From positions 1 through 32,000 of the forward strand of contig BAAFSQ010000058.1 in assembly GCA_054661495.1 (NCBI GenBank): a stretch of DNA of 32,000 nucleotides. Reading direction: 5' to 3'. The DNA is from Zygophlyctis sp. KS116. Its lineage: Eukaryota > Fungi > Chytridiomycota. The translations under genes were made by a program, and so were the position numbers. Shown piece by piece: positions 22,043-25,106 of the stretch (its first letter is position 1; the number at the start of each line of letters is the position of its first letter). The notes under the pieces are model-generated. The model had not been told where the DNA came from. It made no database searches and worked only from the letters and a program-made list of their open reading frames with translations.

Positions 22043-25000
22043 TTATTCGCTCTCTGGTGGCGTAAAATTCTTGAATAGAATGCAAAAGCGATCTAAATAT
22101 CCTGATAGTCTAGAGATTTCAGATTCCTTCTCCCGAACTAAATACTCTAGTTCATGATTGAACCCTTCCAGATATAAATTCTTTTCTCTACTTTTTTCCA
22201 ATTCTTTTTTGATTTCATTGACTTGAGATTGAAGACTTTCATACGAATCTTGAATTTTTTTGTTTTCCTCGACTCGAGCATCGTGCTTTGATTGCAGCTC
22301 TTTGAGCTGATTGTTAAGTTCTTTAAAGGATGTGTCGATCTTATGTACACCTAAAAGAGGTTTAACGTTTTGAAATAGTCTCCACCACGGCCATTGCTGA
22401 AGTTCAACAAAAATTCTAGCATTATGTTGAATTGTCATTATGGCTAATTTCTTTTCATATTTCTTTTTGTATGCCTTTCTAGCCAAATAACCACGAATGA
22501 TTGCTTGAAGTTTAATAATCATTTTAGATATTTTTTTGTCTCTTCTTGTCTCTAAATTGGCTAGCTTTTGGTTATCAATTTAAAATGTTACCGTCTTTGC
22601 TCTAAAAAAGATCTTTGATTTTCCAAGACGAAATTTGTCTGAATCAAGATTTAGAGAATCAAGCAATATTTTCGCAGCTTCTCTGGCATCGATGAATCCT
22701 GGTGGAATCGATGTAGGCTCCAAGATTTCATATCTTCGTCTGAAATCCGCAAAAAATATTCGATTAGGGAATCCTAAACGACTAATACGAATACCTTCTA
22801 AAACACCATTACATCTTAGCTGTTCCAAAATTAGTTTTATATCGAAGCTTCCAGGTTTTTTTTCGTCATTTGGAATGATGCATCGGACGAAATGAGGATG
22901 TGTGGAGTTTAATTGTGCCATCAGAGAAAATAGCTGCTCTTTATGGCGCTGAGTTACTGTTCTAAATACCCCCTTTTTAGTCGTACTGGCACTTCTAGAG
23001 CGACCAGATTCGGATTCAGAAATAAGTTCAACCATATTTTTCGACATCATTCTTTTCATTGCATTTTTCGCTTTTTCTTCATCTCCCAGATATTCAAAAA
23101 ATAGTGATGCAATAAATGGATTCTTTGACTGAGCCAATAGTCGGGTAACATTGTCATTTAATGGATCCTTGTTTTTATCTAACCAACCAAGGGTGTTGTA
23201 TTCAACTTTACCAGCATAATGTTCCAGAATAAACCCCTGATTAAATCTTGGGGTTTCGTACTTATTACTCTTTCCTTTCCAAAGGCCATTCAATTTGCCC
23301 ATATAAGTTGTGTCTGAGCCTTTCGGGACTACACATTCTTCATCCAGAAGATGCAAAATTCCAATTGGCTTTTGTGTTAAAACAATTCTAGTCTTACTGA
23401 AGTTTTTTCAATCAAATCAATGGTTGCCTGGAGATCTAGCCCGAAATCAATAAATTTCCAATCAATTCCTTCCTTCTTATATTCCTCCTGCTCAAGTACA
23501 AACATGTGATGGTTAAAAAACTGCTGAAGTTTCTCGTTAGTGTAATTAATGCAAAGTTGCTCAAAACTATTCAGCTACAAATTAATTGATTAAAATATAC
23601 CTCAAAAATTTCAAACCCAGCAATATCAAGAACTCCAATAAATGAGCAGTTTGGCGTTTCACTGTAAATAGACTGATTAATTCGTTCCACAAGCTTGCTA
23701 AACATGCGCTCATATAGAGAACGTGCAACCACTTCAATAGAATCATAAACCTGCTCAACATTACGGGACTGGATGACCCAATCATCCTTGCCAGCCTTTA
23801 TCTTTGGCCTTAAAATACATCGCAAAAATTCAGCTGAAGGAACTCCTAAAAGTAATCCAAGCTTATCCAAAACATCTTGTGAAGAGTTAACCATTCGAGC
23901 CTGATCATGTCTTTCAGGCTCAAATTCTAAATCTCCAAGATTAAGTGTAGCAGCTACAACCTTGAAAAGATCAATTTGTTCTTGACTTGAAAAGTTCATA
24001 ACCGTTAAAGCTTCCTAAATATTCAACATTTTAAAGTATACAATCAGATTCTTAAAATTCTGCCCATCATCTACACCACTAATATTCTTATTTGTATTCC
24101 TGATAAATTTATATTGATCTAGATCTCGATTTAGAAACAATTGCTCGCGAAGCGTTTCATCTGCTCCTTTTAAAAGCTGATAAAAAATGTGATAATTTCT
24201 TTCTTTTGATGCTTGATGAGTTACTCGAGATTTCTCAAAAAGATAATGTTCGATATAAGCTCCCATTATCTGCCCTGCAGGATTAAACTCTATCCTAATA
24301 AATTTCCCCTAGATTTTAAGATCACAAAGTTTTACAAATCTAGAAGAGTTATTATTCCTAATAGTTTGTGCATTCCCAAAAGACTCTAAAATTGGATTTG
24401 CAATTAAAATTTGTTTTTCCAATGTTCCTGCATTCTTTGATCCTGATGAATGGGCATACGTAATTGACGCCAAATATTGTATTACTTTTTTAGTATTTTC
24501 TGTTTTCCCGGCACCTAAATATGAAATAAGCTTGGTTACCTGATTCACCAGTAATTAACAGTGACTGATTTTCTCCAGTCTCCAACATATCATGATACGC
24601 AGCATCTGAGATTGCAAATAGATGTGGAGGTAATTCTCCCCTTTTCTTCCCTTTATAAGCATGTATAATTTCATCTGTATATAGTGGTAATTTTTTGTAA
24701 GGATTAATAAAAACCAAAAAAAGTCCGGAATATGTCTAAAAGATCAATCGTTTCTCTTACATAAATTAATTTAGATTTATATCTAGACTTGAGATTATGA
24801 ATCACTGATCCTTCATTTAAATAAGTTAAATCAGCCATATCTTCGGTTCTATCAAACTTTATTGGATTCATTTCTTCTACATTTCCATGCTTTACATTCC
24901 TTTCCTGTATTTTAGATGTAATTTCTTACTTCTCCAGTGTCAAGTTTTACTTTAAGATAATCTTTTGTCTCTTCCAGCACATAACCAGCCAGAAAACAAT

Positions 25001-25106
25001 CATTAGGATCTGTTACCCAAACCCATTTTTCCTTTGTACTGCGAACATTATCCTGATCTGTCATATTTGTAGAAAAATTAATGCATTCTAGATATGGATT
25101 AGCCAT
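22043..25106 (-). CDS. Myosin II heavy-chain paralog with complete motor and IQ motifs but only about 100 aa of tail (about 950 aa)
   Basis: MANPYLE start; intact [33 protein letters not shown] and [14 protein letters not shown]. 8 introns of 25-29 nt; spliced length 2853 nt with no internal stop seen; ends NFTPPESE*. Confidence 0.9.
23429..23644. repeat. 216-nt exact direct repeat, copy 2 (in short-tailed myosin)
   Basis: Identical by manual comparison to 20253-20468, including the intron at 23575-23600. Confidence 0.92.

Follow-up and report, generated by a model that had tools for sequence, protein, structure and literature searches.

What is a gene that encodes a class II motor and stops about 100 residues into the tail, when textbooks and classification schemes take a long rod, the builder of bipolar filaments, as the defining mark of class II myosins? 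The question is raised by a stretch of DNA from Zygophlyctis sp. KS116 (contig BAAFSQ010000058.1, positions 1-32,000; this stretch of 32,000 nucleotides (nt) is referred to as the window), AT-rich eukaryotic DNA of ~34% GC whose minus strand carries two class II myosin genes in head-to-tail order. The first, gene B, is a short-tailed class II myosin with its coding sequence at 25106-22043 (minus strand, 9 exons, 950 amino acids (aa)); the second, gene A, is full-length. Our comparison of gene models, tail sequences, orthologues, substitution rates and RNA leads us to conclude that gene B is likely a functional, conserved member of a new class II myosin subfamily in a freshwater chytrid lineage, one that originated as a partial duplicate and probably works as a non-filamentous motor.

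Gene B encodes a complete class II motor

Clean models of both myosin genes were obtained once introns of 25-30 nt were permitted. The gene B frame then ends at a single terminal TAA (22045-22043) with zero internal stops and zero frameshifts, and its eight introns, 25-29 nt long, all have GT..AG borders. No GT donor is present in the final ~90 nt ahead of the stop, and a short intron therefore cannot bypass it. The exons, as modelled from sequence, and the motor features are as follows:

25106-24930, minus strand: exon 1, with the N-terminal SH3-like domain (PF02736 Myosin_N, E 1.2e-9)
24904-24761 and 24735-24540, minus strand: exons 2 and 3
24514-24336, 24308-24042 and 24014-23601, minus strand: exons 4 to 6
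23574-23398, 23368-22592 and 22564-22043, minus strand: exons 7 to 9
24501-24549, minus strand: P-loop GESGAGKT (aa 170-177), divided by intron 3 (24539-24515)
23610-23627, minus strand: switch II DIAGFE (aa 451-456), within a 216-nt tract identical to gene A
22988-23053, minus strand: loop-2 insertion of 22 aa (aa 624-645), found by alignment
22397-22519, minus strand: two IQ motifs (aa 793-809 and 818-833), the light-chain-binding lever (PF00612, E 9.8e-6)

Pfam Myosin_head matched two of the exons (E 4e-74 and E 6e-33), and switch I (NNNSSRFGK) lies at aa 226-234; with P-loop, switch I and switch II all intact, the product is predicted to be an active motor. The second IQ motif was recognised by alignment, and the IQ pair is conserved in the five taxa described below. 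The head-tail proline (P846) is present in the WPWW..KPLL junction and is followed by 104 residues. Assignment to class II is based on PF02736, placement among class II myosins in the tree, the motor motifs, and the succession of two IQ motifs, proline and heptads. A preliminary description of the locus, made from the sequence, had listed a complete N-terminal domain, P-loop, switch I and II, converter, IQ motifs and head-tail proline, with which Pfam and the alignment agree; its lengths of about 950 versus about 2313 aa, and a stop about 100 aa past the proline, came out in our models as 950, 2313 and 104 residues, and the 950-codon model is as clean of stops and frameshifts as it had reported.

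A short predicted coiled coil with a conserved end motif

The portion that follows the proline comprises two features:

22070-22345, minus strand: short tail, one predicted 92-residue helix (aa 851-942) with a heptad repeat, from heptad statistics and AlphaFold2
22070-22111, minus strand: end motif R-L-S/T-G/N-Y-L-D-R-F-C-x-L/V-F-K/N (aa 929-942), separated from the stop by 8 variable residues

Across taxa, 67-74% of the a and d positions are hydrophobic in one register over 95 residues, a level reached by 0-1 of 2000 shuffles; for gene B itself the value is 74%, matched by none of 2000 shuffles. AlphaFold2, run as a monomer on a five-sequence alignment, predicted a single helix over last-exon residues 74-165, with block means of the predicted local distance difference test (pLDDT) of 87-95 over residues 81-160 and the final 8 residues unstructured. 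The coiled-coil prediction proposed as a check in the preliminary description thus gave a register significant against shuffles and one long predicted helix. Across taxa this helix has 92-96 residues, or ~13.5 heptads, slightly under the 15 heptads of a laboratory construct (PMC10723396); 33-38% of its residues are charged, and Leu, Tyr and Phe are frequent in its distal half.

When the five taxa were aligned from the proline to the end motif, not a single gap was required, at an identity of only 53-60%. The distal half of the tail is better conserved, with an invariant L-Y-L-E followed by the end motif, in which Y-L-D-R-F-C is invariant in all five taxa; 6-21 variable residues then precede the stop. 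The preliminary description had pointed to a new C-terminal end as a possible means of carrying cargo. That end stands as the most conserved part of the tail (YLDRFC.LFK), though not as a random one, being conserved in five taxa. Past the proline, the tails of gene B and gene A are ~20% identical, and PF01576 (Myosin_tail_1) gave no match at E <= 0.01 on the gene B last exon. Apart from IQ, the Pfam matches on the short tail were weak coiled-coil noise under the family cut-offs, and a search of the ESM Atlas with the tail end returned only generic coiled coils, below 0.85.

The tandem pair is shared by five taxa

When 1.84 billion representative proteins were queried with exon 8 of gene B, a 255-aa fragment emerged that is 75% identical to gene B, nearer than gene A. 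At the nucleotide level, the JGI metagenome contig L007 has an exon 8 resembling that of gene B, then a last exon stopping at 1620, and downstream of it a gene with its ATG at 1807, a Myosin_N domain and a gene A-like head. The ENA scaffold L008 has the same short-then-long order. The JGI contig L009 and the 6316-nt ENA contig L010 represent one taxon, and in L010 the downstream gene has a tail open reading frame (ORF) of at least 770 aa; of two Logan contigs, L011 belongs to the taxon of L007 and L012 to a further one. Word searches gave one match with the last exon alone and four with an alignment of four tails, and the metagenome scan contributed one locus. The order of short gene, spacer of 83-186 nt and long gene is thus common to five taxa in independent JGI, ENA and Logan assemblies, so that the search of related genomes for the same pair, suggested in the preliminary description, yielded four taxa besides the window.

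In a tree of the motor domain both copies fall within Chytridiomycota as sisters (support 100), with branch lengths of 0.50 for gene B and 0.13 for gene A. A second tree was built on the conversion-free region, that is, exon 8 and the lever. Here the short copies form one clade (support 100/100) and the long copies another (100/98), and the two clades are sisters (92/92) inside Chytridiomycota. Since short and long copies form separate clades, the duplication predates these taxa, and the short form has been retained since. The phylogeny accordingly places gene B in class II, as the preliminary description had it, and in a short-copy clade of its own.

Two annotated proteins were considered as further short forms and set aside. 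P0041 (Batrachochytrium salamandrivorans BASA60_003550, 1114 aa) runs colinear with residues 1-1114 of a full-length gene, is nearer to the long form, and is probably a partial, truncated gene model; P0123 (888 aa), an automatic model from Gigaspora rosea, belongs to an unrelated clade.

Constraint and clade-specific change in the short copies

Ratios of non-synonymous to synonymous substitution rates (dN/dS) were calculated by the Nei-Gojobori method. Among short copies, motor exon 8 gave dN/dS of 0.05-0.10; for the same exon, dN between the window and L007 was 0.155 for the short copies and 0.054 for the long ones. In the last exon, the least saturated pair (L007 and L009, dS 0.80) gave a dN/dS of 0.25 overall, 0.35 in the coil and 0.13 at the C-terminal end. 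Gene B evolves faster than gene A yet is strongly constrained.

Twelve changes fixed in the short clade occur where the long copies and 10 outgroup fungi all share one residue. The short-copy clade carries G776K and V777T (FFRAGV to FFRAKT) at the junction of converter and lever, and E856S at the start of the rod in an otherwise invariant D-E-E-L. Neither the long paralogue nor any of 10 outgroup myosins has the loop-2 insertion, which measures 22-33 aa in the other short-copy orthologues. Orthologues in four taxa, a clade of their own, low dN/dS and the spliced RNA described next bear out the earlier judgement that gene B is neither a fresh nor a dead duplicate.

Spliced RNA from the 5′ end

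Only one run of public RNA contained any of the stretch, a lake-water metatranscriptome (7% share), and four of its five contigs were myosins of other organisms. One contig of 151 nt matched with 0 mismatches, joining 25232-25210 to 25178-25051 across the ATG at 25106; it is spliced 5′ untranslated region (UTR) of gene B crossing its ATG:

25179-25232, minus strand: gene B 5′ UTR in RNA, with exon piece 25232-25210 and a 31-nt GT..AG intron at 25209-25179

After splicing of the UTR, an in-frame start upstream of 25106 is excluded by in-frame stops. Of the transcript evidence sought in the preliminary description, the spliced contig provides the part over the 5′ end and does not reach the 3′ end.

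As a separate observation, the 5′ UTR with its intron (25232-25107, minus strand) is antisense to an ORF at 25145-25345 on the plus strand, a putative first exon of the neighbouring SET gene. The gene B ATG and the putative SET ATG (25145) would be 38 nt apart, and similarity to the SET gene of Polyrhizophydium stewartii begins at 25401.

Origin by partial tandem duplication

P. stewartii has a single myosin II of 2303 aa, with FCH-SH3 and SET genes upstream on the opposite strand and a small gene, HIR3 and TRAPPC13 downstream. Its locus (L013, JADGIZ020000034.1, 62062-90394) was compared with window positions 8110-28168, in which the following features were placed around gene B:

14695-21959, minus strand: gene A, full-length class II myosin, 13 exons, 2313 aa (Myosin_tail_1 PF01576, E 4e-51)
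25401-25753: SET similarity
25808-28168: FCH-SH3 gene
13562-14086: TPR match of a TPR/HIR3-like gene downstream of gene A
8110-9090: TRAPPC13

At least five genes are microsyntenic with P. stewartii in equal relative order and orientation despite saturated synonymous divergence, and gene B sits between SET and gene A. Rhizophlyctis rosea and Clydaea vesicula likewise have a single myosin II, with nothing myosin-like in the 8-10 kb upstream of it. Because the matching P. stewartii neighbourhood holds a single myosin II, gene B is derived from a partial tandem duplication. The comparison shows it as the promoter-proximal product, with the distal breakpoint ~100 residues into the rod. It further shows that the duplicated part comprised the upstream side, motor, lever and first ~100 rod residues of the ancestral myosin II, and that the truncated copy holds the ancestral promoter side beside the SET gene, with the full-length copy 83-186 nt downstream. 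Chytrid homologues of gene A are 2281-2316 aa long, and no third class II head was found in the whole genome (12.7 Mb, 1175 contigs).

The heads of gene B and gene A share 67% protein identity. The synonymous divergence reported in the preliminary description was found to be saturated (proportion of synonymous differences 0.6-0.8) outside two conversion tracts, gene B aa ~170-250 and ~443-522, in which nucleotide identity to gene A is 95-98%. The second of these ranges overlaps a run of exact identity:

23429-23644 (= 20468-20253 of gene A), minus strand: gene-conversion tract, 216 nt of exact identity, spanning intron 6

The continuation of these 216 identical nt through intron 6 is a signature of gene conversion. 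Exon 7 of the two paralogues is 97% identical within the window (23398-23574 versus 20222-20398) and 91% within L007 (87-263 versus 3372-3548), whereas orthologues are 83-85% identical; being closer within each genome than between orthologues, this exon indicates that conversion recurs in both lineages. All eight gene B introns match gene A introns in position and phase. Gene A has an extra head intron after aa 286 (20970-20997, 28 nt, phase 1), also present in the L007 long copy, which was either lost from the short copy or gained by the long copy. The 20 introns of the two genes and the 5′ UTR intron all measure 25-31 nt (for example 24905-24929, 24736-24760 and 21758-21782).

A predicted motor of heavy-meromyosin length

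Conventional fungal class II myosins, represented by gene A and its P. stewartii counterpart, are like gene B in having Myosin_N, motor, two IQ motifs, proline and heptads. They differ in the tail, which is ~1470 residues in the conventional proteins and 104 residues without a Myosin_tail_1 match in gene B, and gene B further has a longer loop 2, the twelve clade-specific changes and its own end motif. In conventional filament-forming myosin II the long Myosin_tail_1 rod includes distal assembly regions (PMC3942036), and by this measure gene B, with no PF01576 match and 104 residues past the proline, falls outside the conventional type. Since it has no distal rod, the part that carries the assembly regions in known myosin II, gene B should not self-assemble into bipolar filaments. 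Its product is probably a natural motor of heavy-meromyosin length, two-headed and unable to form filaments, a reading that the preliminary description had also proposed.

Under this reading, the complete ATPase and actin-binding motor is predicted to drive force, and the two IQ motifs would serve as binding sites for an essential and a regulatory light chain. Through the helix of ~13.5 heptads two chains would associate, giving a molecule with two heads and roughly the dimensions of laboratory heavy meromyosin; lacking distal assembly regions, it would form no bipolar filaments by itself. The invariant Y-L-D-R-F-C that closes the helix is a likely site of anchoring, partner binding or tail-to-tail joining. 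The most likely role would be that of an anchored non-filamentous force generator alongside the paralogue that forms filaments, for instance in actomyosin structures during zoospore formation; cellularization in chytrids requires myosin II activity (PMC11974727) and would be a plausible setting for the gene B motor.

Three known systems can be set beside it. Laboratory heavy meromyosin (human beta-cardiac 1-946 and the smooth-muscle equivalents) has near-equal length and the same parts (motor, two light-chain sites and a stretch of proximal rod, ~14 heptads in gene B), whereas gene B is a natural, selected gene with a conserved hydrophobic end motif in place of an added zipper. To our knowledge, everything known of heavy meromyosin comes from proteolysis or engineered truncations, and searches of the open-access literature turned up no natural class II myosin whose tail is of this kind. 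Schizosaccharomyces pombe Myo2 and Myp2, fungal class II myosins without classical bipolar filaments or with unusual tails, offer the nearest anchored model, Myo2 being held by its tail in membrane-bound nodes (PMC7710916). The Myo2 tail has 711 residues (a rod of 85-90 nm) and the Myp2 tail 1336; that of gene B, a helix of ~14 nm, is ~7 times shorter than the tail of Myo2, and the paralogues arose independently. Minimal bipolar motors of the kinesin-5 type, which belong to another motor superfamily and have no sequence relation to gene B, serve as an analogy only for how a short coil with a hydrophobic end could join two dimers tail to tail.

The off state of myosin II needs two heads and ~15 heptads, the laboratory 15-heptad construct, reported as the shortest that allows the folded, head-to-head state, ending at residue 946 (PMC10723396), and the strict conservation of tail length could reflect the need for such a folded two-headed state. 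In a bolder form, which we put forward tentatively and hold to be doubtful, the tail length would exactly fit the interacting-heads off state and Y-L-D-R-F-C would join dimers tail to tail or to a membrane scaffold. If this were true, gene B would be a minimal class II motor, switchable and non-filamentous, able to contract actin in the absence of thick filaments, and thus a new mode of class II motor action.

Evolution has in gene B produced a truncation near that of heavy meromyosin, kept the tail length without an indel in five taxa and added a conserved end motif. The locus offers a natural test case of how much rod myosin II needs for head pairing and switching off, of what it can do without filaments, and of how a new motor type emerges from a partial tandem duplicate, parts of which conversion still ties to the parent. 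There is also a practical consequence, as chytrid myosin II probes such as regulatory light chain fusions and blebbistatin would not separate the two kinds in species carrying both.

Weighing the alternatives

Several points weigh against a two-headed, non-filamentous motor conserved across these taxa. Dimerisation is deduced from the heptad pattern and a monomer model, and with ~13.5 heptads the helix comes close to the shortest reported to give stable two-headed constructs; filament behaviour, light-chain binding, partners and localisation are likewise predictions. RNA support consists of one contig at depth 2, with 23 nt on its short side, from the 5′ end only. Among the orthologues, L008 includes the final 50 codons of exon 8, then the tail exon and the next gene. 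Within its positions 1-470, motor sequence is missing ahead of nt ~440, and a TAA occupies a codon aligned to a conserved Tyr (RRY-ETL); it may be a chimeric scaffold, contain a long intron or be a broken gene. All five carrier taxa are uncultured, and the databases were searched by single exons, by which annotated full-length short copies in cultured chytrids may be missed.

The first alternative is that gene B is a single-headed monomer whose 92-residue helix is a stable single helix, serving as a lever extension or folding back, and which is bound through its end motif. The ~13.5 heptads with 33-38% charged residues would suit such a helix, laboratory constructs of this length usually carry a leucine zipper for dimerisation (PMC10723396), and the AlphaFold2 model, being a monomer, does not separate the two states. 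However, the a/d pattern holds one register over 95 residues in all taxa (0-1 of 2000 shuffles), as is typical of a paired coiled coil and not of a charged single helix, and Leu, Tyr and Phe abound in the distal half; we consider a monomer unlikely.

Gene B could instead act through gene A, as the preliminary description had also suggested, its short coil forming heterodimers with the proximal rod that limit or alter filament assembly, which would make it a regulator and not an independent motor. The genes are adjacent in five taxa, the heptad register begins at the same proline in both chains, and recurrent conversion holds parts of the heads identical. Set against this are tails only ~20% identical past the proline, short-clade fixed changes at the very start of the rod, such as E856S, and a dN/dS of 0.05-0.10 over the whole motor, more constraint than a capping subunit requires, and we regard regulation through gene A as distinctly improbable.

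It is more improbable still, to the point of being hard to sustain, that the stop at 22045-22043 is not the true end, with the gene B head spliced onto gene A tail exons or both genes read as one unit. The spacer of only 83 nt, the conserved tandem order and an RNA contig that stops short of the 3′ end would allow this. Yet no donor is available over the ~90 nt leading to the stop, each of the five taxa closes its frame 6-21 residues past the shared motif, the spacers vary in both length (83-186 nt) and sequence, and the short tail is itself under selection; a joined transcript would moreover need an intron of ~2.6 kb in a genome whose introns measure 25-31 nt. That gene B is a functionless, decaying partial duplicate or an assembly artefact, as its truncation, its 3-4 times faster evolution than gene A and the damaged look of the L008 contig might suggest, is refuted for practical purposes by dN/dS far below 1 and the short-copy clade, with 950 codons and 8 splice-site pairs intact despite saturated synonymous sites, orthologues in five taxa from independent assemblies, and spliced RNA.

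The spacer ahead of the full-length gene

The gene A ATG lies at 21959, 83 nt past the gene B TAA, and the intervening sequence contains one recognisable element:

21960-22042, minus strand: spacer between gene B and gene A, 83 nt, with an ACGCG element at 21992-21988

In the five taxa the spacers ahead of the long gene are AT-rich, 83-186 nt long and unalignable except for a CGCG core located 15-40 nt before the long-gene ATG in all five (window 21988-21992, L007 ~1780, L009 ~1412, L008 ~1270-1305 and L012 ~1585), which in two of them is extended to ACGCGT. Over the whole 32-kb window, ACGCG is found at only 5 places. AATAAA-like signals after the gene B stop had no consistent presence across the five spacers. 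The CGCG core fits a small promoter of the long gene's own, and the element may be a candidate of the cell-cycle type. In P. stewartii, a GCGCGC occurs ~95 nt before the ATG of its single myosin II.

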